From: Epithemia pelagica
Taxonomy: Eukaryota; Protista; Bacillariophyta
Assembly: GCA_946965045.2 (NCBI GenBank)
Contig: OX337229.1
Location: forward strand, 6,076,001 to 6,140,000
Direction: 5' to 3'
DNA length: 64,000 nucleotides
In this document: piece after piece, positions 1 through 22,577 of the stretch
Layout: each line of letters starts with the position of its first letter
Numbering within the stretch: position 1 is the first letter of the stretch
Translations under genes and position numbers: made by a program
Notes under the pieces: model-generated
What the model was told of the DNA's origin: nothing
The model's input: only the letters and a program-made list of their open reading frames with translations
Database searches by the model: none

Positions 1-3000
1 GATTTGTCGCCATTTGTTTCGCGTGAGAACAACTCTAGAATCCACAGGTTTTGGAATGTGAAAATGGTGTCACTTATAGTCCACGCCATAAGGTATCTGA
101 TAATGCAATGCAATTTGGGTTCGGCAACTTTGATGGTATACTTGTTCCTGTTCGACTTGAGGCTATAGTACTATAAGATTTGTCGCCATTTGTTTCGCGT
201 GAGAACAACTCTAGTATCCACAGGTTTTGGAATGTCAAAATGGTGTCACTTATAGTCCACGCCATAAGGTATCTGATGATGCAATGCAATTTGGGTGCGG
301 CAACTTTGATGGTATACTTGTTCCTGTTCGCCTTGAGGCTATAGTACTATAAGATTTGTCGCCATTTGTTTCGCATGAGAACAACTCTAGAATCCACAGG
401 TTTTGGAATGTGAAAAAGGTGTCACTTATAGTCCACGCCATAAGGTATCTGATGATGTAATGCAATTTGGGTTCGGCAACTTTGATGGTATACTTGTTCC
501 TGTTCCACTTGAGGCTATTGTACTATAAGATTTGTCGCCATTTGTTTCGCGTGAGAACAACTCTAGAATCCACAGGTTTTGGAATGTGAAAATGGTGTCA
601 CTTATAGTCCACGCCATAAGGTATCTGATGTTGCAATGCAATTTGGGTTCGGCAACTTAAATGGTATACTTGTTCCTGTTCGACTTGAGGCTATTGTACT
701 ATAAGATTTGTCGCCATTTGTTTCGCGTGAGAACAACTCTAGAATCCACAGGTTTTGGAATGTGAAAATGGTGTCACTTATAGTCCACGCCATAAGGTAT
801 CTGATGATGCAATGCAATTTGGGTTCGGCAACTTAAATGGTATACTTGTTCCTGTTCGACTTGAGGCTATTGTACTATAAGATTTGTCGCCATTTGTTTC
901 GCGTGAGAACAACTCTAGTATCCACAGGTTTTGGAATATGAACCTGTTGTCACTTATAGTCCACGCCATAAGGTATCTGATGATGTAATGCAATTTGGGT
1001 TCGGCAACTTTGATGGTATACTTGTTCCTGTTCGACTTGAGGCTATAGTACTATAAGATTTGTCGCCATTTGTTTCGCGTGAGAACAACTCTAGTATCCA
1101 CAGGTTTTGGAATATGAACCTGTTGTCACTTATAGTCCACGCCATAAGGTATCTGATGATGCAATGCAATTTGGGTTCGGCAACTTAAATGGTATACTTG
1201 TTCCTGATCGACTTGAGGCTATTGTACTATAAGATTTGTCGCCATTTGTTTCGCGTGAGAACAACTCTAGAATCCACAGGTTTTGGAATGTGAAAATGGT
1301 GTCACTTATAGTCCACGCCATAAGGTATCTGATGTTGTTATGCAATTTGGGTGCGGCAACTTTGATGGTATACTTGCTCCTGTTCAACTTGAGGCTATTG
1401 TACTATAAGATTTGTCGCCATTTGTTTCGCGTGAGAACAACTCTAGAATCCACAGGTTTTGGAATGTGAAAATGGTGTCACTTATAGTCCACGCCATAAG
1501 GTATCTGATAATTCAATGCAATTTGGGTTCGACAACTTTGATGGTATACTTGTTCCTGTTCGACTTGAGGCTATAGTACTATAAGATTTGTCGCCATTTG
1601 TTTCGCGTGAAAACAACTCTAGTATCCACAGGTTTTGGAATGTGAAAATGGTGTCACTTATAGTCCACGCCATAAGGTATCTGATAATTCAATGCAATTT
1701 GGGTTCGACAACTTTGATGGTATACTTGTTCCTGTTCGACTTGAGGCTATAGTACTATAAGATTTGTCGCCATTTGTTTCGCGTGAGAACAACTCTAGTA
1801 TCCACATGTTTTGGAATGTGAAAAAGGTGTCACTTATATTCCACGCCATACGATATCTGATGATGCAATGCAATTTGGGTGCGGCAACTTTGATGGTATA
1901 CTTGTTCCTGTTCGCCTTGAGGCTATAGTACTATAAGATTTGTCGCCATTTGTTTCGCATGAGAACAACTCTAGAATCCACAGGTTTTGGAATGTGAAAA
2001 AGGTGTCACTTATAGTCCACGCCATACGATATCTGATGATGCAATGCAATTTGGGTGCGGCAACTTTGATGGTATACTTGTTCCTGTTCGACTTGAGGCT
2101 ATAGTACTATAAGATTTGTCGCCATTTGTTTCGCATGAGAACAACTCTAGAATCCACAGGTTTTGGAATGTGAAAATGGTGTCACTTATAGTCCACGCCA
2201 TAAGGTATCTGATAATGTAATGTAATTTGGGTTCGGCAACTTTGATGGTATACTTGTTCCTGTTCAACTTGAGGCTATATTACTATAAGATTTGTCGCCA
2301 TTTGTTTCGCGTGAGAACAACTCTAGAATCCACAGGTTTTGGAATGTGAAAATGGTGTCACTTATAGTCCACGCCATAAGGTATCTGATGATGCAATGCA
2401 ATTTGGGTTCGGCAACTTAAATGGTATACTTGTTCCTGTTCGACTTGAGGCTATTGTACTATAAGATTTGTCGCCATTTGTTTCGCGTGAGAACAACTCT
2501 AGAATCCACAGGTTTTGGAATGTGAAAATGGTGTCACTTATAGTCCACGCCATAAGGTATCTGATAATTCAATGCAATTTGGGTTCGGCAACTTAAATGG
2601 TATACTTGTTCCTGTTCGACTTGAGGCTATAGTACTATAAGATTTGTCGCCATTTGTTTCGCGTGAGAACAACTCTAGTATCCACATGTTTTGGAATGTG
2701 AAAATGGTGTCACTTATAGTCCACGCCATAAGGTATCTGATGATGTAATGCAATTTGGGTTCGGCAACTTTGATGGTATACTTGTTCCTGTTCGACTTGA
2801 GGCTATAGTACTATAAGATTTGTCGCCATTTGTTTCGCGTGAGAACAACTCTAGTATCCACAGGTTTTGGAATATGAACCTGTTGTCACTTATAGTCCAC
2901 GCCATAAGGTATCTGATGATGCAATGCAATTTGGGTGCGGCAACTTTGATGGTATACTTGTTCCTGATCGACTTGAGGCTATTGTACTATAAGATTTGTC

Positions 3001-6000
3001 GCCATTTGTTTCGCGTGAGAACAACTCTAGAATCCACAGGTTTTGGAATGTGAAAATGGTGTCACTTATAGTCCACGTCATAAGGTATCTGATAATGCAA
3101 TGCAATTTGGGTGCGGCAACTTTGATGGTATACTTGTTCCTGTTCGACTTGAGGCTATAGTACTATAAGATTTGTCGCCATTTGTTTCGCGTGAGAACAA
3201 CTCTAGTATCCACAGGTTTTGGAATGTGAAAATGGTGTCACTTATAGTCCACGCCATAAGGTATCTGATGATGTAATGCAATTTGGGTGCGGCAACTTTG
3301 ATGGTATACTTGCTCCTGTTCAACTTGAGGCTATTGTACTATAAGATTTGTCGCCATTTGTTTCGCGTGAGAACAACTCTAGAATCCACAGGTTTTGGAA
3401 TGTGAAAATGGTGTCACTTATAGTCCACGCCATAAGGTATCTGATAATTCAATGCAATTTGGGTTCGACAACTTTGATGGTATACTTGTTCCTGTTCGAC
3501 TTGAGGCTATAGTACTATAAGATTTGTCGCCATTTGTTTCGCGTGAAAACAACTCTAGTATCCACAGGTTTTGGAATGTGAAAATGGTGTCACTTATAGT
3601 CCACGCCATAAGGTATCTGATGATGCAATGCAATTTGGGTTCGGCAACTTTGATGGTATACTTGTTCCTGTTCGACTTGAGGCTATAGTACTATAAGATT
3701 TGTCGCCATTTGTTTCGCGTGAGAACAACTCTAGTATCCTCATGTTTTGGAATGTCAAACTGGTGTCACTTATAGTCCACGCCATAAGGTATTTGATAAT
3801 TCAATGCAATTTGGGTTCGGCAACTTTAATGGTATACTTGTTCCTGTTCGACTTGAGGCTATAGTACTATAAGATTTGTCGCCATTTGTTTCGCGTGAGA
3901 ACAACTCTAGTATCCACAGGTTTTGGAATGTGAAACTGTTGTCACTTATAGTCCACGCCATAAGGTATCTGATAATGCAATGCAATTTGGGTTCGGCAAC
4001 TTTGATGGTATACTTGTTCCTGTTCGACTTGAGGCTATACTACTATAAGATTTGTCGCCATTTGTTTCGCGTGAGAACAACTCTAGTATCCACAGGTTTT
4101 GGAATGTGAAACTGTTGTCACTTATAGTCCACGCCATAAGGTATCTGATAATGCAATGCAATTTGGGTGCGGCAACTTTGATGGTATACTTGTTCCTGTT
4201 CGACTTGAGGCTATTGTACTAATAGATTTGTCGCCATTTGTTTCGCGTGAGAACAACTCTAGAATCCACAGGTTTTGGAATGTGAAAATGGTGTCACTTA
4301 TAGTCCACGTCATAAGGTATCTGATAATGCAATGCAATTTGGGTTCGGCAACTTTGATGGTATACTTGTTCCTGTTCGACTTGAGGCTATTGTACTATAA
4401 GATTTGTCGCCATTTGTTTCGCGTGAGAACAACTCTAGAATCCACAGGTTTTGGAATGTGAAAATGGTGTCACTTATAGTCCACGCCATAAGGTATCTGA
4501 TAATTCAATGCAATTTGGGTTCGACAACTTTGATGGTATACTTGTTCCTGTTCGACTTGAGGCTATAGTACTATAAGATTTGTCGCCATTTGTTTCGCGT
4601 GAAAACAACTCTAGTATCCACAGGTTTTGGAATGTGAAAATGGTGTCACTTATAGTCCACGCCATAAGGTATCTGATGATGCAATGCAATTTGGGTTCGG
4701 CAACTTTGATGGTATACTTGTTCCTGTTCGACTTGAGGCTATAGTACTATAAGATTTGTCGCCATTTGTTTCGCGTGAGAACAACTCTAGTATCCTCATG
4801 TTTTGGAATGTCAAACTGGTGTCACTTATAGTCCACGCCATAAGGTATTTGATAATTCAATGCAATTTGGGTTCGGCAACTTTAATGGTATACTTGTTCC
4901 TGTTCGACTTGAGGCTATAGTACTATAAGATTTGTCGCCATTTGTTTCGCGTGAGAACAACTCTAGAATCCACAGGTTTTGAAATGTGAAAATGGTGTCA
5001 CTTATAGTCCACGTCATAAGGTATCTGATGATGCAATGCAATTTGGGTGCGGCAACTTTGATGGTATACTTGTTCCTGATCGACTTGAGGCTATTGTACT
5101 ATAAGATTTGTCGCCATTTGTTTCGCGTGAGAACAACTCTAGAATCCACAGGTTTTGGAATGTGAAAATGGTGTCACTTATAGTCCACGTCATAAGGTAT
5201 CTGATAATGCAATGCAATTTGGGTTCGGCAACTTTGATGGTATACTTGTTCCTGTTCGACTTGAGGCTATTGTACTATAAGATTTGTCGCCATTTGTTTC
5301 GCGTGAGAACAACTCTAGAATCCACATGTTTTGGAATGTGAAAATAGTGTCACTTATAGTCCACGCCATAAGGTATCTGATGATGCAATGCAATATGGGT
5401 GCGGCAACTTTGATGGTATACTTGTTCCTGTTCGACTTGAGGCTATACTACTATAAGATTTGTCGCCATTTGTTTCGCTTGAGAACAACTCTAGAATCCA
5501 CAGGTTTTGGAATGTGAAAATGGTGTCACTTATAGTCCACGTCATAAGGTATCTGATGATGCAATGCAATTTGGGTGCGGCAACTTTGATGGTATACTTG
5601 TTCCTGATCGACTTGAGGCTATTGTACTATAAGATTTGTCGCCATTTGTTTCGCGTGAGAACAACTCTAGAATCCACAGGTTTTGGAATGTGAAAATGGT
5701 GTCACTTATAGTCCACGTCATAAGGTATCTGATAATGCAATGCAATTTGGGTTCGGCAACTTTGATGGTATACTTGCTCCTGTTCAACTTGAGGCTATTG
5801 TACTATAAGATTTGTCGCCATTTGTTTCGCGTGAGAACAACTCTAGAATCCACAGGTTTTGGAATGTGAAAATGGTGTCACTTATAGTCCACGCCATAAG
5901 GTATCTGATAATTCAATGCAATTTGGGTTCGACAACTTTGATGGTATACTTGTTCCTGTTCGACTTGAGGCTATAGTACTATAAGATTTGTCGCCATTTG

Positions 6001-9000
6001 TTTCGCGTGAAAACAACTCTAGTATCCACAGGTTTTGGAATGTGAAAATGGTGTCACTTATAGTCCACGCCATAAGGTATCTGATGATGCAATGCAATTT
6101 GGGTTCGGCAACTTTGATGGTATACTTGTTCCTGTTCGACTTGAGGCTATAGTACTATAAGATTTGTCGCCATTTGTTTCGCGTGAGAACAACTCTAGTA
6201 TCCTCATGTTTTGGAATGTCAAACTGGTGTCACTTATAGTCCACGCCATAAGGTATTTGATAATTCAATGCAATTTGGGTTCGGCAACTTTAATGGTATA
6301 CTTGTTCCTGTTCGACTTGAGGCTATAGTACTATAAGATTTGTCGCCATTTGTTTCGCGTGAGAACAACTCTAGAATCCACAGGTTTTGAAATGTGAAAA
6401 TGGTGTCACTTATAGTCCACGCCATAAGGTATCTGATAATGCAATGCAATTTGGGTGCGGTAACTTTGATGGTATACTTGTTCCTGTTCGACTTGAGGCT
6501 ATACTACTATAAGATTTGTCGCCATTTGTTTCGCGTGAGAACAACTCTAGTATCCACAGGTTTTGGAATGTCAAAATGGTGTCACTTATAGTCCACGCCA
6601 TAAGGTATCTGATAATGCAATGCAATTTGGGTTCGGCAACTTTGATGGTATACTTGTTCCTGTTCGACTTGAGGCTATACTACTATAAGATTTGTCGCCA
6701 TTTGTTTCGCGTGAGAACAACTCTAGTATCCACAGGTTTTGGAATGTGAAACTGTTGTCACTTATAGTCCACGCCATAAGGTATCTGATAATGCAATGCA
6801 ATTTGGGTGCGGCAACTTTGATGGTATACTTGTTCCTGTTCGACTTGAGGCTATTGTACTAATAGATTTGTCGCCATTTGTTTCGCGTGAGAACAACTCT
6901 AGTATCCACATGTTTTGGAATGTGAAAATAGTGTCACTTATAGTCCACGCCATAAGGTATCTGATGATGCAATGCAATATGGGTGCGGCAACTTTGATGG
7001 TATACTTGTTCCTGTTCGACTTGAGGCTATACTACTATAAGATTTGTCGCCATTTGTTTCGCTTGAGAACAACTCTAGAATCCACAGGTTTTGGAATGTG
7101 AAAATGGTGTCACTTATAGTCCACGTCATAAGGTATCTGATGATGCAATGCAATTTGGGTGCGGCAACTTTGATGGTATACTTGTTCCTGATCGACTTGA
7201 GGCTATTGTACTATAAGATTTGTCGCCATTTGTTTCGCGTGAGAACAACTCTAGAATCCACAGGTTTTGGAATGTGAAAATGGTGTCACTTATAGTCCAC
7301 GTCATAAGGTATCTGATAATGCAATGCAATTTGGGTTCGGCAACTTTGATGGTATACTTGTTCCTGTTCGACTTGAGGCTATTGTACTATAAGATTTGTC
7401 GCCATTTGTTTCGCGTGAGAACAACTCTAGAATCCACAGGTTTTGGAATGTGAAACTGTTGTCACTTATAGTCCACGCCATAAGGTATCTGATGATGCAA
7501 TGCAATTTGGGTTCGGCAACTTTGATGGTATACTTGTTCCTGTTCGACTTGAGGCTATAGTACTATAAGATTTGCCGCCATTTGTTTCGCGTGAGAACAA
7601 CTCTAGTATCCTCATGTTTTGGAATGTGAAAAAGGTGTCACTTATAGTCCACGCCATAAGGTATCTGATGATGTAATGCAATTTGGGTTCGGCAACTTTG
7701 ATGGTATACTTGTTCCTGTTCAACTTGAGGCTATATTACTATAAGATTTGTCGCCATTTGTTTCGCGTGAGAACAACTCTAGAATCCACAGGTTTTGGAA
7801 TGTGAAAATGGTGTCACTTATAGTCCACGCCATAAGGTATCTGATGATGCAATGCAATTTGGGTTCGGCAACTTAAATGGTATACTTGTTCCTGTTCGAC
7901 TTGAGGCTATTGTACTATAAGATTTGTCGCCATTTGTTTCGCGTGAGAACAACTCTAGAATCCACAGGTTTTGGAATGTGAAACTGTTGTCACTTATAGT
8001 CCACGCCATAAGGTATCTGATGATGCAATGCAATTTGGGTTCGGCAACTTAAATGGTATACTTGTTCCTGTTCGACTTGAGGCTATAGTACTATAAGATT
8101 TGTCGCCATTTGTTTCGCGTGAGAACAACTCTAGTATCCACATGTTTTGGAATGTGAAAATGGTGTCACTTATAGTCCACGCCATAAGGTATCTGATGAT
8201 GTAATGCAATTTGGGTTCGGCAACTTTGATGGTATACTTGTTCCTGTTCGACTTGAGGCTATAGTACTATAAGATTTGTCGCCATTTGTTTCGCGTGAGA
8301 ACAACTCTAGTATCCACAGGTTTTGGAATATGAACCTGTTGTCACTTATAGTTCACGCCATAAGGTATCTGATGATGCAATGCAATTTGGGTGCGGCAAC
8401 TTTGATGGTATACTTGTTCCTGATCGACTTGAGGCTATTGTACTATAAGATTTGTCGCCATTTGTTTCGCGTGAGAACAACTCTAGAATCCACAGGTTTT
8501 GGAATGTGAAAATGGTGTCACTTATAGTCCACGTCATAAGGTATCTGATAATGCAATGCAATTTGGGTGCGGCAACTTTGATGGTATACTTGTTCCTGTT
8601 CGACTTGAGGCTATAGTACTATAAGATTTGTCGCCATTTGTTTCGCGTGAGAACAACTCTAGTATCCACAGGTTTTGGAATGTGAAAATGGTGTCACTTA
8701 TAGTCCACGCCATAAGGTATCTGATGATGTAATGCAATTTGGGTGCGGCAACTTTGATGGTATACTTGCTCCTGTTCAACTTGAGGCTATTGTACTATAA
8801 GATTTGTCGCCATTTGTTTCGCGTGAGAACAACTCTAGAATCCACAGGTTTTGGAATGTGAAAATGGTGTCACTTATAGTCCACGCCATAAGGTATCTGA
8901 TAATTCAATGCAATTTGGGTTCGACAACTTTGATGGTATACTTGTTCCTGTTCGACTTGAGGCTATAGTACTATAAGATTTGTCGCCATTTGTTTCGCGT

Positions 9001-11010
9001 GAAAACAACTCTAGTATCCACAGGTTTTGGAATGTGAAAATGGTGTCACTTATAGTCCACGCCATAAGGTATCTGATAATGCAATGCAATTTGGGTGCGG
9101 TAACTTTGATGGTATACTTGTTCCTGTTCGACTTGAGGCTATACTACTATAAGATTTGTCGCCATTTGTTTCGCGTGAGAACAACTCTAGTATCCACAGG
9201 TTTTGGAATGTCAAAATGGTGTCACTTATAGTCCACGCCATAAGGTATCTGATAATGCAATGCAATTTGGGTTCGGCAACTTTGATGGTATACTTGTTCC
9301 TGTTCGACTTGAGGCTATACTACTATAAGATTTGTCGCCATTTGTTTCGCGTGAGAACAACTCTAGTATCCACAGGTTTTGGAATGTGAAACTGTTGTCA
9401 CTTATAGTCCACGCCATAAGTTATCTGATGATGCAATGCAATTTGGGTGCGGCAACTTTGATGGTATACTTGTTCCTGTTCGACTTGAGGCTATTGTACT
9501 AATAGATTTGTCGCCATTTGTTTCGCGTGAGAACAACTCTAGTATCCACAGGTTTTGGAATGTGAAAATAGTGTCACTTAAAGTCCACGCCATAAGTTAT
9601 CTGATGATGCAATGCAATTTGGGTGCGGCAACTTTGATGGTATACTTGTTCCTGTTCGACTTGAGGCTATACTACTATAAGATTTGTCGCCATTTGTTTC
9701 GCTTGAGAACAACTCTAGAATCCACAGGTTTTGGAATGTGAAAATGGTGTCACTTATAGTCCACGCCATAAGGTATCTGATGATGCAATGCAATTTGGGT
9801 TCGGCAACTTTGATGGTATACTTGTTCCTGTTCCACTTGAGGCTATTGTACTATAAGATTTGTCGCCATTTGTTTCACGTGAGAACAACTCTAGTATCCA
9901 CAGGTTTTGGAATGTGAAAATGTTGTCACTCATATTCCACGCCATACGATATCTGATAATGCAATGCAATTTGGGTGCGGCAACTTTGATGGTATACTTG
10001 TTCCTGTTCGACTTGAGGCTATAGTACTATAAGATTTGTCGCCATTTGTTTCGCGTGAGAACAACTCTAGTATCCACAGGTTTTGGAATGTGAAAATAGT
10101 GTCACTTATAGTCCACGCCATAACGTATTTGATAATGCAATGCAATTTGGGTGCGGCAACTTTGATGGTATACTTGTTCCTGTTCGACTTGAGGCTATAC
10201 TACTATAAGATTTGTCGCCATTTGTTTCGCTTGAGAACAACTCTAGTATCCACAGGTTTTGGAATGTGAAAATGGTGTCACTTATAGTCCACGCCATAAG
10301 GTATCTGATGATGTAATGCAATTTGGGTGCGGCAACTTTGATGGTATACTTGCTCCTGTTCCACTTGAGGCTATTGTACTATAAGATTTGTCGCCATTTG
10401 TTTCGCGTGAGAACAACTCTAGTATCCACAGGTTTTGGAATGTGAAAATGTTGTCACTTATATTCCACGCCATACGATATCTGATGATGCAATGCAATTT
10501 GGGTGCGGCAACTTTGATGGTATACTTGTTCCTGTTCGACTTGAGGCTATAGTACTATAAGATTTGTCGCCATTTGTTTCGCGTGAGAACAACTCTAGTA
10601 TCCACAGGTTTTGGAATGTGAAAATAGTGTCACTTATAGTCCACGCCATAACGTATTTGATAATGCAATGCAATTTGGGTGCGGCAACTTTGATGGTATA
10701 CTTGTTCCTGTTCAACTTGAGGCTATTGTACTATAAGATTTGTCGCCATTTGTTTCGCGTGAGAACAACTCTAGTATCCACAGGTTTTGGAATGTCAAAC
10801 TGTTGTCACTTATAGTCCACGCCATAAGGTATCTGATGATGCAATGCAATTTGGGTTCGGCAACTTTGATGGTATACTTGTTCCTGTTCCACTTGAGGCT
10901 ATTGTACTATAAGATTTGTCGCCATTTGTTTCGCGTGAAAACAACTCTAGAATCCATTGGTTTTGGAATGTGAAAATGGTGTGACTTATAGCCCACTGCA
11001 TAAGCTATCC
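1..11010. repeat. 176-bp tandem satellite array, ~62.5 monomers, open at the left window edge
   Basis: Monomer gatttgtcgccatttgtttcgcgtgagaac...gaggctatagtactataa recurs every 176 bp. Repeat-derived ORFs start at 74, 250, 426 ... 10810 (=74+61x176). First monomer is 71/176 GC (~40%). Confidence 0.99.
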
Positions 11011-14000
11011 CTCATCCGAATACAGGTATATGATGGCTTCAATTTTATAAGAGCTATGTCTGTCATCTATATGAACCTTCGGTGGTGGATGCTTCGTAGT
11101 TCTAAAGCAGACATGGAATTCTTTACATTCCGCTGACATCCTGCGACACTTTTCTGCAATCAAAGGTTTTGCTATAAAGAGGCCCTTCATTTCACAAACT
11201 CTTGAAAGGCAAACATAGTTCCAGTTTCCAGTGTAATCCCAGTTCGATATGTAGAGGAACTCAATTGACCGTCCTTGCAGTTTATGGACGGTTCTTGCGT
11301 TTGACACGTTCACAGGAAGCTGGGTCATCTTCATCATTTTCCGAACTCTTGTCATGTTAAGCAGTGGCAATGGAAACTGTACTTGTTGACAGACAGTTTC
11401 TGGTTTTAGAATGACGAGTTGGTTACGTCCACCATCCAACATCTCCACTTTTAGTCCTTCAAGTTGGGAGACCTTTATACTCCAAACATAGAACCCATCA
11501 ATCATTATTTTTTCCATGTCATTCAACGTAACACCTTGTTTGAGAACAAGTCCCTTGAATTCACACATTGCTCCATTTGCAATACATGAATCAACTTTTT
11601 TATTCTCATTGATGCACAATGGTCTTCCATAGTACAGTTTCAGCAGAGGGTCATATCTTTTGTTGTCTTTTCCTCGTAGATGTCCTTCTCCACATGTTGC
11701 ATAGAGGATATCTTCACACGACTTGTTAAAATTGATGTATTCAGAACGTGTCCCAGCTTTCCTCCACTTCAAATTAGAGGCTTTTATACAGACTGTGTGT
11801 AGTGGTGGTCGTACAGTTGGATCTTTTGAATGGGTGTTTTCGAGATGTTTCCCAAAAATAGCATCATTGATGGCAGCGCGATCAAGGTTGGTTTTTGTTG
11901 CATATACCACATTTGGGGGTATATCACTTTCTGTTGGTCCACCTCTTGAACCAACAACCCGAGTGTTAATCTTCTGAACGTCTCTGTCACTTGGCCCTTC
12001 ATCCCGGAATATTGAAAGTAAGTTACCCCAAGGTCGATCCAAATGAAACCTGTGGTTTGTTTTTAGCTCAAGAAAAGTATGGACCCATTCATACCATTTT
12101 TCAAAGTCTTTGAATAAATACAAGGGCTGAGCTTTCACTGGTTTGAGCTGCGTAAAATCTCCAGCGAAGACAATTGGAATCCCCCCAAATTTGTGATCTG
12201 GCTTCAAAATGCGTCTCAATTTGTAATCCAGTTTATCAACAACATCTCTTGATGCAAAAGAAATTTCATCTACAATCAAGAGATAAGCATTTTTCCATTC
12301 TTCTGGTTCATTGGTAACTTCCCTGTTTAATGCACAAGCCATATGTGTCGTTTCACCATTGATTCCAACAGCTGCTGCACCAGTAAGGGCTGTAACAACA
12401 ATTGTACGTTTGTCATACCTGACCTTGAGGTTAGAACAGAGATTTTTGGCATATCTCACAAGTGTTTTGATGACATGGCTTTTCCCAGATCCACCTGCTC
12501 CAGAAAGAAAGGATATGAACTGGGATCCTTGATTAACCTTCTGCAAAGTCTTTCTTGTGTGATTCATTTTTCTTCTACGGAATGCAGGCATTTGTTCTTG
12601 TCCAGTCGTGTCTTTTGCTGCTTCATCGTGGAGGCGAAGTACAAATGCAGACATTATGGCCTCGAATGCATATTCCTGGTCTTCATCACCTCTGAAGTGA
12701 TGAACAGCATATTCTCGGATATTCTTCAGTGTTCCAGTTGCTTTTATTTCGTCGTGTCCATCATCCATGGTAATCCTTTCTGTTCTTGATATTGCTAACT
12801 CATGAAGTGCTTTCTTTGTCACAAAAGTTGAATAACGAGAAATGAAATCATCATCGTCTAGACCACTTGGATGCTGTTGATCTGGATCCATTTCCTTGCT
12901 TTGTGTTTCAAAAACGTTTGCACCCACACGTTCTCCAAGATTGGGAGTCGCAATGTTTTGCACACCACATTTTGCAGAGCCACATTTTTGGATGATTGAT
13001 GAGGAAAACTGATAAATGTTGTTCGACGTTCTCAACTGAAGTCCTGAGTCATTTAGTTCATTCATTGTTTCAACCAATTCTTCAAATGCACTGTCAATGT
13101 CATCGTGATTGGTTTCTTCAGCATTGTTCTCATTATAAGACCCATGGCCACAAGCAGCTGACGGGCATGATGTTTCAGACTCAAGAGAATCACACGGTCG
13201 CCCAGCTTCCAAACTATTGCGACAATCCTGAATATTTGCAAGAATCTCACAATGTGCTTCTGTTATAATTCCACTGCAAAGTGCCTCCTGGAAACTTCTA
13301 ACATATGAGCCTGCAACAGTCAAATCCGTTTGAACTGAACGAAAGGGATGAAACAGTAAGTTTGCCTTCTTGGCATAAAGTTCCATAGCATGATGCTCCT
13401 CCTCGAGAATTTCGGGAAGTTGAATAGAATCAATCGTTTGGTTTCCAAAAGAACTGGTGTTCATGAAATCTCTGTAATTGACCACAGGAACCTTGATGTG
13501 TTTGCTAGCCTGCACACCAAGATGATTTTTTGATGGATGGTCCTTTATCCATTCCAGACTGCTTTTTGTTCTTCTGCTCACTGTGAACTGGGACAAAAAA
13601 TCATACAAACAAGTGCCTTCTAGTTCTTCTGGACGCAATAAGTAGTTTGCGACACTTGAAGTCAAAAAAGGTGTCCCCTCAATGGAATCAACAGACAAAT
13701 CATTCAGACCATCTGTTTCAAAATGGTTCAAATTGACATATGCAAAATCATGAGAATAATGAAAACGTGAACCTCCATTTCTCACCAAAAAAGATGCCAT
13801 AGGAGCACTGCATATATGAGCAGAGGTGGAAAGCAACATTGCACCAATCAATGTTTTCATTACTGTAGCCACTCTGTCGTTCTCATTGTCTTCTCCTCCT
13901 TGCTCTTGATTTATGTTCGAAGACTCGTCCTCAAGTTGGAGTAAGGACTCTCTCATTTTCTTGATCATATGTTTTGCAGAATTTGTAAAAAGTTCATTGT

Positions 14001-14856
14001 CTTCTGTTTGTGTGTTCTTTGAAATGTAGCATGTCATATACATGACACTTCCTCCGTCCACTCCAGTGACAACATTTGTATTGCAACCAAATAGCTTGCT
14101 TGCGTGGGAACTGTGAATATTGACAAATGCATCAGCATGGGCCCGTTTAGAGTTCAAGGTGAACAATTGTCTTGACTGCTCCTTTCCTTTCCAGTCAAAC
14201 CAATCAGTCGTGTCTGCTGTAAATTTTAATTCTGTTTCGTCACATGACGCACATGGAACATGCATGCGACATTCTTCTCCTTTCTTGAAGCAGGAATTTG
14301 CATGTTTTGAACGATGCAGATTGCGCAATAGGTTCATGACAAATACGCCTTTGCTTGTCATCCGGGAAGGCTTCTTGAGTTGTTCCCGCATTAAGAGTAA
14401 CTCCATGGCATTGGTGAGTTTTGTTTTGTCAGACAAATCTGACTCGGCATTGGTTTCATTTTCTCTTTGCTCTTGAGTAAAAGTCATTGTTTGGAAGATT
14501 TCCTTCAATCGGGAGAAAACCAAATCCTCACTTGTCATACATGTGTTACATGTTGTGCACTTGGCAATCGCTTTCCCACCAAGTGATGTAGTTCCAAGTT
14601 TTGTGCGCAAATTCCTGATGTCTTGTTTTGAGCAGAATTCAAAAACATTTGAAGTACAATCTTGTTGAACACAGGAAGGAATGGCTTCACCATGCATGTA
14701 TGTGCTCATAACTTTTGATGCATATTCAACCAATTGTTCCGAGAACCGTTCTCTTGTTGCCTCACTTCCAAGTCCTTGAAGTAGCACAGACCATTTCATC
14801 AGATACAACAGGAAATGTGCATGAAGTGTTTTCCTGCCTTGTTCCTCAACAGCATA
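11005..14856 (-). CDS. Helitron RepHel C-terminal part: Rep motifs 2/3 plus PIF1-family SF1 helicase
   Basis: YAVEEQGRKTLHAHFLL (HUH, just upstream of the track ORF start), YMTCYISK (catalytic Tyr), FLSGAGGSGKSHVI (Walker A), TALTGAAA, LLIVDEISF (Walker B), FAGDFTQLKPV, TVHKLQG, YVCLSRV. Confidence 0.95.
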   Translation of the reverse strand, partial: YAVEEQGRKTLHAHFLLYLMKWSVLLQGLGSEATRERFSEQLVEYASKVMSTYMHGEAIPSCVQQDCTSNVFEFCSKQDIRNLRTKLGTTSLGGKAIAKCTTCNTCMTSEDLVFSRLKEIFQTMTFTQEQRENETNAESDLSDKTKLTNAMELLLMREQLKKPSRMTSKGVFVMNLLRNLHRSKHANSCFKKGEECRMHVPCASCDETELKFTADTTDWFDWKGKEQSRQLFTLNSKRAHADAFVNIHSSHASKLFGCNTNVVTGVDGGSVMYMTCYISKNTQTEDNELFTNSAKHMIKKMRESLLQLEDESSNINQEQGGEDNENDRVATVMKTLIGAMLLSTSAHICSAPMASFLVRNGGSRFHYSHDFAYVNLNHFETDGLNDLSVDSIEGTPFLTSSVANYLLRPEELEGTCLYDFLSQFTVSRRTKSSLEWIKDHPSKNHLGVQASKHIKVPVVNYRDFMNTSSFGNQTIDSIQLPEILEEEHHAMELYAKKANLLFHPFRSVQTDLTVAGSYVRSFQEALCSGIITEAHCEILANIQDCRNSLEAGRPCDSLESETSCPSAACGHGSYNENNAEETNHDDIDSAFEELVETMNELNDSGLQLRTSNNIYQFSSSIIQKCGSAKCGVQNIATPNLGERVGANVFETQSKEMDPDQQHPSGLDDDDFISRYSTFVTKKALHELAISRTERITMDDGHDEIKATGTLKNIREYAVHHFRGDEDQEYAFEAIMSAFVLRLHDEAAKDTTGQEQMPAFRRRKMNHTRKTLQKVNQGSQFISFLSGAGGSGKSHVIKTLVRYAKNLCSNLKVRYDKRTIVVTALTGAAAVGINGETTHMACALNREVTNEPEEWKNAYLLIVDEISFASRDVVDKLDYKLRRILKPDHKFGGIPIVFAGDFTQLKPVKAQPLYLFKDFEKWYEWVHTFLELKTNHRFHLDRPWGNLLSIFRDEGPSDRDVQKINTRVVGSRGGPTESDIPPNVVYATKTNLDRAAINDAIFGKHLENTHSKDPTVRPPLHTVCIKASNLKWRKAGTRSEYINFNKSCEDILYATCGEGHLRGKDNKRYDPLLKLYYGRPLCINENKKVDSCIANGAMCEFKGLVLKQGVTLNDMEKIMIDGFYVWSIKVSQLEGLKVEMLDGGRNQLVILKPETVCQQVQFPLPLLNMTRVRKMMKMTQLPVNVSNARTVHKLQGRSIEFLYISNWDYTGNWNYVCLSRVCEMKGLFIAKPLIAEKCRRMSAECKEFHVCFRTTKHPPPKVHIDDRHSSYKIEAIIYLYSDEG

Positions 14857-16070
14857 TCACCACGCTAACAGATCACCAAAAATTCCAAGATCTTTTATGT
14901 TTTTCCTCTTGTTCATATCCCAACCAAGTAGATGCTGAATAGTAATTGCTATCACATTTTCAAACTCAATGGCACAAAGCCCTGGATGAACTTGCCGAAT
15001 TCCACCACACTCAAGTATATATTCGTGTTGGTCATGAACCGGTGTTGTGTTTGGATCAGGAGGACTCCTTTCACCAGTTTTTTTGTTTGCCATTACACTT
15101 ATTCTGAAATTCACTGCATCCTCAGGTGTAATGGTAAACATGACACTTGGCAGGCCAAATTTTGCAATCATTGCCAACATATTCTGCCGTGCTTTCTTTG
15201 CAGCAGCACCTGTGTGTCCCATTGATGAAGTAATTGCTTTCATCTTTTTCAAAAAATTGTCACTTGGAGCTGATCCTTGTGCGGAATCAAGATGTCGTTG
15301 TATAGCTTCCTCAATCTGCTTATCTGTGATTGTTGCAAATGATTCTGCCTGTGATTCACTGGTTCTCAAATAAGAGTTTGACACCATTCTCTGTCGCTCA
15401 AACATGTTGTGAATAATGCACACAAAATTGGCCCGATGGAAATTTTTAGTTGAATGTCTCATGAGATATTCAAAATATTTCATGCCAGAATGTGGTTGAC
15501 CTTGACTGTCGTATGCACCAATACCAAATGGGAACTGAAGCGGAAAAGCCTTAAGAAGATTTTCGCCCTGATAGTCTTTCAATAATGTTTTTGATGAACG
15601 CGAAATCAAAGTTGCATCCTTATTCTCGCGGTCAGCCAAAAGACAATCAAGTGTTACCTGCTTGAAATCATTTTGTGATGAACAGCCGCCATTGATTAAC
15701 TGTGGTTCATCGGAGTCTGGGAAAACAGCTGTTATTTCAAAGACTTGTTCCACATTTGATGAAGCTGTTTCATCAATGTCCTCACTTTTGTCAATAATTA
15801 TTGGCTCAATGATTTTGTCGTCCGGCAAATCTAAGTCTTTGTATAAATGATTGTTGTCCTTCAGCCATTGCAATGCCATATGGACCTTATTCCAACGAAC
15901 CTTTGTACGCTGGTATGTCAGAGCTTTCTGTCTGGGTGTGAATGGTCCTGTTAGAATGACAGCAATTTGTGGTAGTAATGGAGAATCCTGTGGATCTTCT
16001 TGAATGTCTTCATCGTCATGATGCTCAGTTTCTTCTTCGCCGTCATTGCCGGTGTTCCCCTCAGATTTGT
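14857..16070 (-). CDS. Helitron RepHel middle segment (end of DUF6570-like region plus Helitron_like_N/Rep motif 1), ends in premature TGA
   Basis: Frame is open upstream of the track ORF (GPFTPRQK...VRWNKVHMALQWLKDNNHLY), then AFPLQFPFGIG and FGLPSVMFTITP. Same frame as 11005..14808, separated only by TGA at 14857-14859. Confidence 0.88.
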
Positions 16071-16934
16071 AGTGGAGTTGTTGGCAGTACTTTCGATATC
16101 TTCATTGCTGTCATTATCATCACCAATACTTTCTTCATCAAACAATGCAGTTTCAGCCCAGTGTACAGGGAGTTCTTGCCCATTTTGCGCGTCATTATCA
16201 TTAGTTGAATTCTGCCCTGTTGCTGTACGACACCAATTAATCACTCCATTTACTGCATCTAGGTCATTGTAGTACAACGCATGCCACCCCTTGATAGATT
16301 TATGTGACCCTGCGGTAAACGAAAAGATATGTTTATTTGTTCTTGCAGGTGAAATCAAAGCCAGCTCAACTTCATTCAAATCTTGCAAACGGGCAGGTGT
16401 GGGACCAAACATCAATCCATTAAATATGGCATATTTGGGGACCTTGTCAGGATCACATGATTCTTTGTTCATTTGAATAATAGTATTGTAACAAGTGCTA
16501 CAACATCCCAGTCCTTCACTTTTCTGCCCCTTTTTCAATGCATATGAAGATGGGGAAAGAACAAGTTGCTGCAGAAAGCGATATCGTGCAGTGTTTCTTG
16601 CATTATAACAACTTTGTGTGTAATGCCCCTTGATTATTTTCTTGCTGTCTTCTGAGATGCTGCAATGGGTGAAATCCAGATTTGCCTTCAGAAACTTGGG
16701 TTGAATTCGTCTGTGCTTTAGATCTTCTAGTTTCAAACATTTCTCATGTCCAACCTTGATGAACTGGTTGCAAACACAACACACTTTTGGAAAAAACTTG
16801 TCTCCGTCTTTATACAATAGGGAGTCACGGCATGCTGCTGCTTTAGCAACCCCTTTCTCAATGGAAGAGTCTCTAACATACATGCTAGCTAGGCCTGCTA
16901 TGGAAACACTGAGTGTTACCAAGCAGCTGCACAT
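15951..16934 (-). CDS. Helitron RepHel N-terminal segment (Cys-rich Zn-finger-like plus DUF6570-like), frameshifted relative to the rest
   Basis: CCVCNQF and CCSTCY Cys pairs, VPKYAIFNG...PARLQDLNEVELALIS motif. First ATG at 16934. Sensible reading switches frame at about 16060-16100. Confidence 0.8.
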   Translation of the reverse strand: MCSCLVTLSVSIAGLASMYVRDSSIEKGVAKAAACRDSLLYKDGDKFFPKVCCVCNQFIKVGHEKCLKLEDLKHRRIQPKFLKANLDFTHCSISEDSKKIIKGHYTQSCYNARNTARYRFLQQLVLSPSSYALKKGQKSEGLGCCSTCYNTIIQMNKESCDPDKVPKYAIFNGLMFGPTPARLQDLNEVELALISPARTNKHIFSFTAGSHKSIKGWHALYYNDLDAVNGVINWCRTATGQNSTNDNDAQNGQELPVHWAETALFDEESIGDDNDSNEDIESTANNSTTNLRGTPAMTAKKKLSIMTMKTFKKIHRILHYYHKLLSF

Positions 16935-16974
16935 AAATTTTGTGGCAGTAAGATTTGCATAATTTGGTCGACGC

Positions 16975-17002
16975 AAAGTAGAAAGTAGAAAGTAGAAAGT
17001 AG
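16975..17002. repeat. (AAAGTAG)x4 microsatellite upstream of RepHel
   Basis: Four perfect 7-mers read directly. Confidence 0.9.
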
Positions 17003-17114
17003 ACAACTTCGCTTACTCGCTAACATGGGGCTCGTCGGCTCGTCAGCCAAAGTGTTATTACTACTAATTTTGTCGCAACCGTTATGTCTGTTTGTACTCT
17101 CTTTGGGCCCATTT

Positions 17115-17906
17115 TCATTCGTCATTGGGTTCGTCGCCAATTTTGGATTCGTCAACCTCTGATCTACACTCCTCCTGATCCTGAGAGGCATCCTGCTTTT
17201 CACGCACACCCTTGGGGTATCCCCACTTGTCCACCGCGCATTTCGCGAACATGTCGTAGCGGTCACGTGAGAACACCAAATCGGCCACACCTTCCTCCTC
17301 ACCACCCAAGAACTCGTATAGGTCCTGGCACTTTTCAAGTGGAAAATAATTTTCAACAATCATGGCGACATTCTCATTTGGTAAGACTTCGTCCAACGAT
17401 CGAGGGGGACTCTTGGAGTGCACAAGTCCTGCTTCATTGGTCTTGTAAGTGCGTAGAAACCCATTTTTCTTGTCCTCCGCAGTCATCACCCTGACCATCG
17501 TCTCACACATCTTCTTCATCATTTGATCTTTCTGAAGCTCGTTTTCGGCATCCTCACAAAATCCTACGACAACCGACCAGTTGTACTCCCGACCATTCTT
17601 GTCGGGGTTTCCATTCAACATGGTGTTATCATTGTCACGGGAAACACGACGATAGAGTTTCTCGATTCTGATATCAAACTCATCGAAAAGCTGCGACTCC
17701 TTGTCCTTTATCAACTCAAACACAGGCTCCATGAAGCCTGATCGGGGCTTCGTGGTCCCAGCAAGTTGCATGTTTGCAACAACTCCCTTCTTCTTGGCGG
17801 TAGCAAACTTGAACTTCTTGCACAAACAACAATCAAACTTAGATGAAAATGCCTCAATGAAGTATAAGAAACAAAAATCACCACTTACCTTCTTCGTTGG
17901 GGGCAT
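17115..17906 (-). CDS. Hypothetical protein, probable Helitron-associated accessory gene, likely 72-nt intron at 17888-17817
   Basis: 263-codon ATG ORF. MPPTKK|gtaagt...caag|KFKF gives an in-frame intron and a basic NLS-like N-terminus. Acidic C-terminus. No family recognised. Confidence 0.6.
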   Translation of the reverse strand: MPPTKKVSGDFCFLYFIEAFSSKFDCCLCKKFKFATAKKKGVVANMQLAGTTKPRSGFMEPVFELIKDKESQLFDEFDIRIEKLYRRVSRDNDNTMLNGNPDKNGREYNWSVVVGFCEDAENELQKDQMMKKMCETMVRVMTAEDKKNGFLRTYKTNEAGLVHSKSPPRSLDEVLPNENVAMIVENYFPLEKCQDLYEFLGGEEEGVADLVFSRDRYDMFAKCAVDKWGYPKGVREKQDASQDQEECRSEVDESKIGDEPNDE

Positions 17907-17959
17907 GATGAATATGGAACATCAGTTGATTGTTGTGCAGGGATTGTGGGTTGGATTGT

Positions 17960-18084
17960 GGTTCAACCAGGGACTGGGTCCAACAAGGGATTGGTGCTCG
18001 ACCAGATGGATTTGGGTTCAACCAGACAGATTGGGTTCAACCACCAGACAGATCGGGGGCATCATCAGGATTTGGGGTTCAACC
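17960..18084. repeat. Four copies of the near-palindrome GGTTCAACC between divergent ORFs
   Basis: Copies at 17960, 18015, 18034 and 18076. Confidence 0.8.
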
Positions 18085-18173
18085 AGGGTTTGGCAGGTGG
18101 TGACAAAGTCATCTGTACACGTCATCACAGGTGCAGATCATGGGTGTCATATTTGTGCAAATTGGCTTTTATC

Positions 18174-18707
18174 ATGTCGTCAAAGCGTCCTGGATTCATC
18201 CATCACCCTGGTAATATGCCCACCATGGGGACTTCACCATTTCGGATGAAAACACTTGTGGCTCACTGTCCTCACCAATTCGTTGGCTGTTATGTCTTGG
18301 TCAGTGACTGTTTGCGAGTGAAACTTGATGTTATTAAAAAACATACGACTGCTGGTCACGTCGTGAACCAGGTAAAAAACTTCTTGGGTGTGTTTACAGA
18401 CCTTGCACATCTTCGCCGTATCGATAATTCCAAGCTGATCCCGAAGAACTCGTACGTCTTCAACGAGGATAGTGATGTGATTGATAACGCCATCACGCTT
18501 GAGCTTGTGATGATGAAAGTTGACCAGGAGGCTTTGTCCCGCCACCTCTGGTACTGGTCAGAAGAAGACGAAGAATCTTTTGAATCTTCCTTTGGTGAGA
18601 TGGATGAATCGGAAATTCGCGACACCAGCAATGAAGAAACTGGTAACAAGAACGATAACCAGAAGGAAGTTGAAGACTCTGCTGTTGACGGAAACAAGGA
18701 AGATTAG
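18174..18707 (+). CDS. Hypothetical protein with acidic tail
   Basis: Open frame from ATG 18174 (alternative ATG 18246) to 18707. Globular-looking core followed by a D/E-rich tail. No family recognised. Confidence 0.5.
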   Translation: MSSKRPGFIHHPGNMPTMGTSPFRMKTLVAHCPHQFVGCYVLVSDCLRVKLDVIKKHTTAGHVVNQVKNFLGVFTDLAHLRRIDNSKLIPKNSYVFNEDSDVIDNAITLELVMMKVDQEALSRHLWYWSEEDEESFESSFGEMDESEIRDTSNEETGNKNDNQKEVEDSAVDGNKED

Positions 18708-20490
18708 TAGATCACTTAGATTATATCTATAGTAGATTTGTTTCGATTCACGTTATCCCTACTTGTTGCTCTAGTAGTTATATATCCGAAAAATAGAGTT
18801 GTTAGCCGCATTGATGGCTACTTAGGACGACAATCAGTGTCGGCAAAACATACATTACTGCGAGAACAGAAACATCCGACGAGTAAACAATTTTGTGCGT
18901 CTTCTCTTGACGACCCAGTGCGAGCAACAAAGTCGTACACGCTCTCCATTTGGCCTTGGCCGCGCAACAACGGAACTTGAAAAAAAATCGGAATCACCAA
19001 AATTTGCAATTGAAGAATATACCCCTTGATCATTGCCATCAGCAATCATGACTGTCGAAGGAAGGAACTCTGTGATCGAAAATACATGTTAACGTTTGTT
19101 GGGCGCCATTTGGTTTGAAAACACCATGGGCCATGTGGTGTAAAGAAAGTCGAATGCGGAGTACTTGCGGTCCCTCAAGAAGCTGGTGCCCTTTTTGAAA
19201 TGGGACAAGGGACAGTGGTGTCCAACTCATCAACCTAATACCACAATTGGGAAAATTATTGACGCGCGCGGCCAAGTGTGGTATTGTTCGAACCAAGATG
19301 TGACAAGGAGGCCAATGCCGGGGGTATTCAAGCTCTCATCACACAATTCCCAAATCTCCTTCCAAACTTGAGAGACTTGTTGATGGGTCTTCGTCAGGTC
19401 CCTTGTGTGTTACCAAAATTAAGGTCCCTGGTCAAGGGATTTTGGCCGCCTAGGACAAATCTGGTGGGATTGCCCTGCACGGTGTGACCGAATACATGTT
19501 TACGCCCGCCACCATGTTTGATGTCATTCACGAGATGCCGACGACCATCATGACGTCCAGGGTTTTACTGGCGACCGTTTGTTGGGTTTTACTTGCGACC
19601 GTTAGTTGGGCGTCATTTAGTTTCAAAACACCATGGGCCGTATGGTGAAAAGTAAACCGCATGCAGAAGACTTCTGGTCCCTCAAGAAGGTGGTGTTGAA
19701 ATGGTTTCCAAATCGATCGACAATCCCTCGAACAAACATGGTATTCTTCTTTTTGCTCGTGTCTTGCTTAGGTAGGGAAATGATAACCAGTTCTCGATGA
19801 TACCCATAATATCTGTCTCAAGAAAACCTCCTTTGAACGACTGCGCTTCTGCACATGAGAATGTCCAATTCCACCAAGAATCCTTGGTTCCTCTCTCTCT
19901 CTATCTATCTCTTCGTTCGTGAATCCCAATCGATCGATAATCACTCGAACAAACATGGTATTCTTCTTGTTGCTCGTGTCTTATGCCGTTTTACTGGCGA
20001 CCGTTTTGTTGGGCGCCATTTGGTTTGAAAACACCATGGGCCGTATGGTGAAAAGCAAACCGCATTCGCCAATGGTTTCCCAATCGATCGACAATCCCTC
20101 GAACAAACATCTTGTTGCTCGTGTCGTATGCCGATACGCTACTGGCGTCGTTTGTTGGGTGGCCAACTTATGTAGGGAAATAATAACCTGTCTCAAGAAA
20201 ACCTCCTTTGAACGACTGCGCTTCTGCACATGAGAATTCTTGGTTCCTCTCTCTCTCTTCGTTCGTGAATCCCAATCAATCGACAATCCCTCGAACAAAC
20301 ATGCTCTCTCTCTTCGTTCGGGAATCCCAATCGATCGACAATCACTCGAACAAACATGGTATTCTTCTTGTTGCTCGTGTCTTATGCCGATACGTTATGT
20401 AGGGAAATGATAACCTGATCTCGATAGGCCAGCCCTGATGTGGCTGTTCTAAGTTGGTGATTGTTTGGGAGCAGTTTCAAGGCATGAACT

Positions 20491-20523
20491 CCCCACTCCC
20501 CACTCCCCACTCCCCACTCCCCA
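20491..20523 (-). repeat. (CCCCACT)4CCCCA G-quadruplex-prone repeat, copy 1
   Basis: Five GGGG tracts with AGT loops on the minus strand. Confidence 0.85.
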
Positions 20524-21228
20524 TGTTCCTTCTGCTTCCACCTGACGACGAATGGTTATGGGAAGCATGGCACAGAACACTCTCCACGAACGTAACAGGA
20601 GAGAACGCAGGCCCGATCAATAATCACTCGAACAAACATGGTATTCTTCTTGTTGCTCGTGTCTTATGCCGTTTTACTGGCGACCGTTTTGTTGGGCGCC
20701 ATTTGGTTTGAAAACACCATGGGCCGTATGGTGAAAAGCAAACCGCATTCGCCAATGGTTTCCCAATCGATCGACAATCCCTCGAACAAACATCTTGTTG
20801 CTCGTGTCGTATGCCGATACGCTACTGGCGTCGTTTGTTGGGTGGCCAACTTATGTAGGGAAATGATAACCTGTCTCAAGAAAACCTCCTTTGAACGACT
20901 GCGCTTCTGCACATGAGAATTCTTGGTTCCTCTCTCTCTCTTCGTTCGTGAATCCCAATCAATCGACAATCCCTCGAACAAACATGCTCTCTCTTCGTTC
21001 GGGAATCCCAATCGATCGACAATCACTCGAACAAACATGCTCTCTCTTTCTTCGTTCGGGAATCCCAATCGATCGACAATCACTCGAACAAACATGGTAT
21101 TCTTCTTGTTGCTCGTGTCTTATGCCGATACGTTATGTAGGGAAATGATAACCTGATCTCGATAGGCCAGCCCTGATGTGGCTGTTCTAAGTTGGTGATT
21201 GTTTGGGAGCAGTTTCAAGGCATGAACT

Positions 21229-21261
21229 CCCCACTCCCCACTCCCCACTCCCCACTCCCCA
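21229..21261 (-). repeat. (CCCCACT)4CCCCA G-quadruplex-prone repeat, copy 2
   Basis: Identical to copy 1, offset 738 bp. Confidence 0.85.
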
Positions 21262-21360
21262 TGTTCCTTCTGCTTCCACCTGACGACGAATGGTTATGGG
21301 AAGCATGGCACAGAACACTCTCCACGAACGTAACAGGAGAGAACGCAGGCCCAATACCGA

Positions 21361-21544
21361 GAATATAGCGCCCCAAACAAGCATTCAATGTAAAAGTCCT
21401 GTTTCAGTCATAAACAGATGGTTGGGAGTATTACATTAATACCAAAGATATGGAATATAGCGCCCCAAACAAGCATTCAATGTAAAAGTCCTGTTTCAGT
21501 CATAAACAGATGGTTGGGAGTATTACATTAATACCAAAGATATG
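21361..21544. repeat. Exact 92-bp tandem duplication
   Basis: gaatatagcgcccc...accaaagatatg at 21361-21452 and 21453-21544. Confidence 0.95.
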
Positions 21545-22443
21545 CTTAGGGAAATACCATACTCACAGATTACGCGGTTGACGGTGCACCCCAAAATCAT
21601 ACCATGACTCACCATTAAACTATTCGTAGCTGTATATATTTAACGGTTTCAACAACGCTCCTTTTCTCTCATTTGTACTGCTTGTGCTATTCTGCATCCG
21701 TTGACAGAACAGCTGGTCATTCTGGGAAGTTCCACCCCAGACCCCAAAGCCTTCGGCCTACCCATCACGTTCATACTGAACTTAGACGAATATCTCCACC
21801 CGAGCCCCGCTATGCTGACGTATTGGGGCTTTCTGATTGGCCTCACTATCCGGATAGCGGATTAGCGGAGCCAAAGGGAAATAAACTCCACGATCTCCGT
21901 TAAAAGAAGGCCGCTATCTCGCGTTGCGCGTACGCATTGCGCATATGCCCTCTCTTGTTTCGGTTAAAAAGGTGTGCGGCCGCAGAAGTTGCGGAATTCA
22001 AACAAGACAATCAACGAGAGACGAGAGCACAAAGCATAAACCAAAGATGGAGGACTCGTTGTTCTCCCTCTTCATTGTTGACTGTCATGGTGAATCATGT
22101 TGTTGTTCATGGCCAATGTAGATGTAGGTTGTAGGTTGCAGTCCAATCGTCCTATTGTATTCCCTGTCCGATTTCCGATTGATTGTCTTATAATCGAACA
22201 CATCAAAAGTTTGATGCTTTGAATGATGCATTTGTTTGATTGTTGCATTCCTTCCGATCCGTGATCCTCGAATCATCTTGCTGTGCATGGTTCTTGTCCC
22301 ATTGTAGGAAGTAGGGAACACAACAATGGAAAAAGAGATGGTAAGCGATCGTCACAAATCAATACGTGCCATTGTCATGTTTTCGACACGAGAGAAACTG
22401 TTGGCAGCAGACGTTAATTTATTTATGCCGACGGTTATATTTT

Positions 22444-22512
22444 GCTCCGCTATCCGCTATTTTCCCCGCTATTCGGGGCCCCAAATAGCGGCAAAAATGC
22501 GGATAGCGAAGC
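22444..22512. other. ~70-bp imperfect palindrome/hairpin
   Basis: CGCTATCCGC (22448) pairs with GCGGATAGCG (22499), CCGCTATT pairs with AATAGCGG, centre GGGGCCCC. Confidence 0.85.
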
Positions 22513-22577
22513 TGTTTAGCGGTTAGAGGAGATGGTGGAGTTCGATAGCGGCCCCGGGTGGAGATAGCCTTAAGTAT

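Follow-up and report, generated by a model that had tools for sequence, protein, structure and literature searches.

Satellite repeats carried by Helitron-type transposons

Transposons of the HINE/DINE-1 type carry central, satellite-like repeats of 140–180 bp between two end modules, in variable copy number, according to two published accounts (PMC4067079; PMC7492417). Usually, up to five monomers are present, with a maximum of 29 in oyster (PMC7492417). A similar arrangement is given in a preprint for germline Helitrons of Paramecium, where satellites lie between a left (LTS) and a right terminal sequence (RTS) and the number of repeats varies (bioRxiv 10.1101/2025.11.06.686955). Here, an array of a 176-bp satellite is described in a stretch of 64,000 nucleotides from Epithemia pelagica (contig OX337229.1, positions 6,076,001 to 6,140,000; hereafter the window), where it lies on the 3′ side of a Helitron gene encoding RepHel, the Rep-helicase protein of these elements. 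Very probably, the array is an integral part of a rolling-circle transposon of autonomous type whose ends are Helitron2- or Helentron-like. No report on Helitron-borne satellites in diatoms was found in the literature.

The element resembles HINE/DINE-1 transposons, such as oyster Cg_HINE and pearl, in its subterminal inverted repeats, 3′ palindrome and T-rich insertion sites (PMC4067079; PMC7492417), and like HINEs it has tandem repeats embedded between two terminal modules. Unlike HINEs, which are non-autonomous, it contains RepHel sequence, holds 13 to ~100 monomers and resides in a diatom-like algal host. The Paramecium elements are likewise full-size Helitrons bearing open reading frames (ORFs), with satellite blocks ahead of the right terminal sequence; yet, according to the preprint, they form a separate Helitron clade with mostly shorter minisatellite units (e.g., ~44 nt) and are located at chromosome ends (bioRxiv 10.1101/2025.11.06.686955), whereas the element described here carries one nucleosome-length monomer at dispersed loci.

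One element with one array at seven loci

The element was compared across seven loci, each on a contig of its own, in one assembly (ENA ERZ21939226). The window belongs to contig ctg1257l of that assembly, where P0122 is its own ORF, and is joined by L009, a locus on the same contig to the left of the window, around P0159. Five further contigs (L001, L003, L004, L006 and L007) hold members of the same 90% protein cluster, and L008 is the seventh locus. In addition, three public runs, X2 and X3 among them, were compared as Logan contigs.

A common order is found at all seven loci, with flanks that are unrelated beyond the exact termini. It begins with a 5′ TC and a 17-nt terminal repeat, followed by a leader of ~4.8 kb, RepHel with its stop codon (TAA in the likely ancestral state), a 37-nt spacer and the 176-bp array. 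Beyond the array comes a tail of ~170 nt in which the 5′ 17-mer recurs in inverted orientation, and the element closes with a hairpin (GC stem, GAA loop) and a terminal C(C/T)AA. Both element ends and the array lie within one locus in L003, L004, L006 and L007, and in these four the array ends at one fixed junction, from which a shared tail (173 nt) leads to the terminus. L008 shows RepHel, spacer, array, tail and 3′ end, while the window element has its 5′ end in the window and its 3′ end in L009. Both array junctions are identical wherever they can be read, the proximal one being deleted in L007. The arrays themselves differ widely in length, with 13.2 monomers in L006, 37.8 in L004, ~40 in L008, 47.5 in L003, 48.2 in L007, at least 56 in L001 and ~100 in the window element.

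The termini are equally consistent. The 5′ start TCGTCTAAG... is common to the window (at 21789), L003, L004, L006 and L007, with an unrelated flank before each; 5′ TC is present in all copies, and the 3′ end is CTAA in L003 and CCAA in the other six. The 5′ 17-mer recurs inverted 23 nt from the 3′ end with 16/17 matches, a score reached by 0/5000 shuffles. The 3′ hairpin, 4 nt from the end, has a 5-bp GC stem and the GAA loop, though it does not reach significance by fold energy alone (z = −0.75), and the 5′ end folds into small palindromes too.

The original prediction, made from the letters of the window, suggested a Helitron-seeded satellite, and that the array may sit inside the element, before a 3′ terminus beyond the window. 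That the satellite is tied to the Helitron, which has spread it, is borne out by the seven loci with their common junctions and ends amid unrelated flanks. As for the position of the array, the terminus was located at L009:3507, ~24.1 kb to the left of the window start, so that the proposed look past the left window edge did uncover a hairpin, a C(C/T)AA end and the inverted 17-mer.

The window element thus runs from 21789 to about −24081 (3′ terminus L009:3507), a span of about 45.9 kb made up of ~10.9 kb of unique sequence, ~100 monomers and two nested transposons. L009 contains, in order, 17.2 monomers, a foreign insertion of 5.4 kb, 2.7 monomers, the tail and the 3′ terminus. The foreign insertion (L009:4133-9509, window about −23455 to −18079) interrupts the satellite and encodes ORFs of 637 and 376 aa without a Pfam match. 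The second nested transposon, which is presumably Plavaka-like, has its left edge in the array at L009:12530.

Within the window, the satellite forms one array at 1-11009, for which Tandem Repeats Finder (TRF) reports 62.6 copies with 95% matches and 0% indels. An anchor motif of the monomer occurs 63 times at a spacing of exactly 176 bp, full monomers are 95–99% identical to their own consensus, and similarity to the monomer ends at 11009. The features of the element in the window are as follows.

1..11009, minus strand: 176-bp satellite array, internal 3′ module of the Helitron, extending left of the window (TRF, spacing, consensus identity)
10981..11009, minus strand: first (proximal) partial monomer, 29 nt, degenerate (24/29 consensus matches)
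11005..11007, minus strand: TAG that ends the window ORF 11005-14808, a secondary stop inside the partial monomer (TAC in the consensus)
11010..11046, minus strand: 37-nt spacer between the likely ancestral stop and the array, read through in the window copy (conserved in the window, L001, L004, L006 and L008)
11047..11049, minus strand: TAT codon at the site of the family's likely ancestral stop, TAA (sister copies, run contig, homologue ends)
11050..14808, minus strand: RepHel helicase part (PIF1-like) and C-terminus (Pfam PIF1 2e-21; 98% identity to P0001)
14809..14811, minus strand: in-frame stop in the Rep motif region, W*YAVEEQGRKTLHAH (translation compared with P0127; Cys in other copies)
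14857..15879, minus strand: RepHel Rep (HUH) part (Pfam Helitron_like_N 6.5e-12)
15951..17006, minus strand: RepHel N-terminal part (DUF6570, Pfam 4.6e-10; different frame)
17007..21772, minus strand: 5′ non-coding leader with short tandem repeats and one local duplication (TRF)
21773..21789, minus strand: 5′ terminus, TC and 17-nt terminal inverted repeat with a small palindrome; host flank from 21790/21791

Empty insertion sites

Two neighbouring insertions bear on the history of the array. L007 (ctg1245l) and the window element have homologous flanks, matching at 96.5% along 1.7 kb of 5′ flank and at 99.8% along 1.2 kb of 3′ flank, the homologous stretches being L007:1640-1735 and 19882-21128, L009:1-3506 and window 21790-23475. 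The two insertions lie 39 bp apart in the same orientation, and each contig therefore shows the empty site of the other, without element or satellite. Since the empty sites carry neither, the satellite arrived with the element, and a pre-existing satellite is excluded at these sites. The L007 site with its insertion is distinguished from the empty one by the element itself plus one ambiguous T, with no target-site duplication; at the window site, the empty form additionally lacks 5 nt (TGGTA). The contigs ctg1245l and ctg1257l could represent two haplotypes or a duplicated region, and the paired insertions 39 bp apart suggest a local insertion preference.

The link was also approached from the satellite, with the translation of an ORF within the L001 array as query. 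The 28 satellite-ORF protein matches all map to the seven Helitron contigs, i.e., the six already known and the 51,779-bp contig of L008, and no satellite-bearing contig without a Helitron is present among these 28 matches, the search being indirect, via gene-caller ORFs inside arrays. The gene caller placed no ORF in the window's own array portion, and P0159, to the left of the window, matched the satellite ORF. A proposed check that each array adjoins a RepHel 3′ end accordingly came out positive for every array found in this indirect search. In a metagenome scan, a conserved 27-nt word of the monomer gave no match.

The RepHel gene and its displaced stop codon

RepHel is encoded on the minus strand of the window in three pieces recognized by Pfam (PIF1, Helitron_like_N and DUF6570; E-values as listed above). 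The Rep (HUH) domain, with the motif VEEQGRKTLHAH, is fused to a PIF1-like helicase, which places the element in the Helitron superfamily. As the DUF6570 piece stands in another frame, the RepHel gene of the window is broken, while intact relatives have a single ORF of about 1900 aa. Pfam detected no endonuclease domain in RepHel, and the protein ends about 60 aa past the last helicase motif, like its homologues.

The boundary between gene and array differs among the copies. The codon equivalent to the window TAT at 11047-11049 is TAA in L001 and L008, TAG in L004 and AAA in L006, and in L003 the site has been removed by a 27-nt in-frame deletion; a contig of run X2, from the same organism, carries T instead of A at 11047 and thereby has TAA. 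P0001, the closest protein (98% identity), stops 14 residues before the window ORF, at ...DDRHSS, and 19 RepHel homologues, down to 44% identity, all end within a few residues of this point. Because sister copies and the run contig show TAA and the homologues end there, TAA is likely the ancestral RepHel stop, which would place the array start 37 nt downstream of it; in L001, for example, 12685 is the end of the gene and 12723 the start of the array. Judged by this alignment of copies, the window tail SYKIEAIIYLYSDEG, i.e., the last 14 codons, is a read-through of the 3′ untranslated region (UTR) after stop loss: the change from TAA to TAT lengthened the ORF by 14 codons, so that it ends by accident at the TAG in the first monomer. 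In the window copy as in L003 and L006, the ORF enters the first monomer, and the varied states of the stop imply that three copies gained the same 14-codon extension independently. As an observation on its own, the RepHel stop site shows four states and one deletion among six copies that are otherwise 97–99% identical.

The first partial monomer is divergent, and its diagnostic differences are common to five of six sister copies (L001, L003, L004, L006 and L008), the region being deleted in L007. The original prediction had noted that the last, degenerate monomer overlaps the TAG at 11005-11007, where the consensus has TAC, and this is indeed what the partial monomer of 24/29 matches shows. 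Its statement that the array begins at the stop codon is true of the window and two other copies but not of the family, whose likely ancestral stop lies 14 codons upstream. It had also proposed looking in other copies for one to a few monomers after the stop; an array is present in the six sister copies, with 13 or more monomers in each.

Probable local remodelling of the arrays

Most monomers have their nearest neighbour in their own array (57/58 in the window, 52/56 in L001 and 42/48 in L007), while L003, L004 and L006 share more monomers among one another. Mean monomer divergence is 4.3% within the window array as against 5.4–8.2% between arrays, and the unique parts of the copies differ by about 1.3–3.5%. 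Because monomers resemble their own array most, it appears that each array was reshaped at its own site once inserted, through unequal exchange or slippage. The course of events could then be pictured as follows. The element, array included, inserted at a T-rich site without target-site duplication; the arrays may subsequently have expanded and contracted by unequal exchange or replication slippage; and the window copy would have expanded most, to about 17.7 kb, before it was targeted by two other transposons.

Weighing the explanations

According to the original prediction, the coding 3′ end of RepHel itself was amplified, and the monomer would thus be derived from coding sequence. That the ORF reaches the first monomer in three copies (window, L006 and L003) is in line with this, as is a weak match between a monomer dimer and the 62 nt upstream of the array, at 11026-11050 (score 20, p = 0.03, 2000 shuffles), which the prediction had read as a faint remnant of a monomer. 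However, this match has the same monomer phase as the array start and not the phase expected of a collinear continuation, and it was treated as indistinguishable from chance. The dimer shows no similarity to the 173-nt 3′ tail (p = 0.79) or to the 3′ UTR of the sister family L002 (p = 0.96), the ancestral stop lies 14 codons upstream of the window stop (TAA or TAG in L001, L008 and L004, and TAA in run contigs), and the 19 homologues end at that stop. The alignment of the read-through peptide with the satellite peptide, also put forward, merely restates the likeness of the partial monomer to other monomers. With the supposed coding tail being 3′ UTR read-through, homologues ending near ...DDRHSS and no significant monomer similarity, the amplification of coding sequence is not upheld, and a coding-tail origin is regarded as highly improbable. 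Slightly less credence still is given to a chance insertion of the Helitron beside an existing satellite, or to a block of Helitron and satellite spread by segmental duplication. The adjacency itself would fit either, and so would the long window array with its nested transposons, as in heterochromatic satellites; against both stand the identical array junctions where readable (deleted proximally in L007) and the position of the arrays between conserved element ends, the unrelated flanks beyond the exact termini, the homologous empty sites without satellite, and the satellite-ORF search, in which no satellite-bearing contig lacked a Helitron.

If the array is a built-in module, it may nevertheless have entered the element in more than one way. 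A piece of host satellite captured into the 3′ UTR, in place of a self-generated repeat, is possible but the less favoured origin. No similarity of the monomer to the spacer, the tail or the sister 3′ UTR could be detected, and capture of host DNA by Helitrons and Helentrons is on record (PMC4067079). Yet the satellite-ORF search detected no independent 176-bp array on other contigs, the metagenome scan with the 27-nt word gave no match, and there is no vestigial older 3′ terminus between stop and array, as capture by end bypass would predict. That the nucleosome-length array is a selected functional module and no passive cargo, perhaps built or resized by the element's own rolling-circle replication or setting the local chromatin state, is considered improbable.

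Several observations weigh against the array being a built-in module spread by the element, or limit what can be drawn from it. RepHel sequence is present at all seven loci but, as called, broken in every copy, so that present-day mobility is at best putative. The satellite-ORF search would miss short or ORF-less arrays and non-autonomous copies. Array edges are 88–97% identical between copies, no better than the interiors, and positional orthology of the edges beyond the first partial monomer was rejected for this reason. About 18 of the ~100 monomers of the window element are inferred, for a stretch of ~3.2 kb of array that separates the nested transposon from the window start. The alignments of the monomer to spacer, tail and L002 3′ UTR provide no usable evidence of origin. 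The insertion site is T-rich, and one terminal T may belong to either host or element, so that the target could be T|T or A|T. Finally, run depth is uninformative on monomer number: word depth in the Logan contigs (X2, X3), summed per bin, is 200–29000 for the satellite vs about 450–514 for RepHel, which translates into roughly 145 to 1950 monomers depending on contig layout, a range that includes the assembly's own count of roughly 340 or more. One loose end in the run contigs, at 10418, matches the array-to-tail junction.

Sister families and affinities of the element

The array is absent from the nearest relatives. The sister family L002 (72% nucleotide identity) is laid out alike, with the hairpin ~110 nt after its stop, where the stem is preserved and the loop differs, and has no array. 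L010 encodes an intact RepHel of 1901 aa (59% amino acid identity) and has no such array either. The array is therefore a feature of one family. Directly after RepHel in L010 (L010:15700-16100), two similar segments of ~65 nt stand roughly 150 nt apart, and this short direct repeat occupies the position where the 176-bp array sits in the studied family.

The ends, the T-rich target and the missing endonuclease match Helitron2 as well as Helentron/HINE ends, and the element may be called Helitron2- or Helentron-like, a likeness confined to these features. Like Helitron2 of the Chlamydomonas type, it has RepHel without endonuclease, asymmetric terminal inverted repeats and end palindromes. Insertion of Helitron2 at T|T or T|C is given in the accessible parts of two sources, which do not name internal satellite arrays among the features of Helitron2 (PMC4067079; bioRxiv 10.1101/2025.11.06.686955). 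Unlike Helentrons, the element has no C-terminal AP-endonuclease domain. The Rep motif 2 of Helentrons has S between G and P (RGSPHxH; PMC4067079). The clade described here has R(K/G)(T/S)LHxH, i.e., R-K-T-L-H-x-H with T or S and then L, to which the S-versus-L criterion of that account assigns no type (PMC4067079). Canonical Helitrons (HLE1) share RepHel, 5′ TC, a 3′ hairpin, the CTRR-like CTAA end of L003 and the lack of target-site duplication, but the element differs from them in its 17-nt terminal inverted repeat and in that six of seven copies end in CCAA, not CTRR. The canonical type inserts between A and T, whereas the target here may be A|T or T|T.

Other features of the copies

The leader (17007..21772) is 96–99% homologous to L001, L003 and L004 and contains, according to TRF, repeats of 53-57-mers, 7-mers, a 24-mer and a 92-mer present twice. 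At window 20249-21261, a block of 53-57-bp repeats and (ACTCCCC)5 occurs twice in the window copy and once in L003 and L004, a doubling that amounts to a local duplication of ~740 bp. An internal head-to-tail duplication of 7.2 kb is found in L001 (L001:1-13131), where the equivalent of window 18839-11649 is present twice, giving two tandem RepHel copies, the first without a 3′ end. Some run contigs of X2 and X3 join 12123 to 13517, 13539 to 13643 (GT..AG) and 13699 to 13996 (window 12123-13996), at a depth about a quarter of that of RepHel; these joined contigs are probably internally deleted derivatives of the element. An antisense ORF of 253 aa upstream of RepHel was examined as an accessory gene and rejected: an ORF of equal length is present in L010, but the two show no similarity (E = 3.5), and there is no Pfam match. 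In L003, about 230 bp separate the 3′ end of the Helitron from an ORF (L003:22686-23357) that has cytochrome b domains and may be an organelle-derived insert.

Significance

The satellite was carried to at least seven genomic places by a transposon, and the arrays then grew or shrank locally. The phenomenon is of a known kind, as Helentron/HINE elements and Paramecium Helitrons carry comparable arrays; what sets this case apart is the length of the array, the RepHel-encoding element and the host lineage. It offers a fully bounded case of a transposon seeding satellite DNA, with both ends, empty sites and seven copies of 13 to ~100 monomers, in which one sees how a small number of transposon-borne repeats becomes an array of 17 kb that other transposons later invade. 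Behaviour known from animals and ciliates is thereby also documented for a diatom-like alga and for an element that encodes RepHel. In annotating the genome, the 176-bp satellite is best taken as transposon cargo and not as a candidate centromere or subtelomere repeat.

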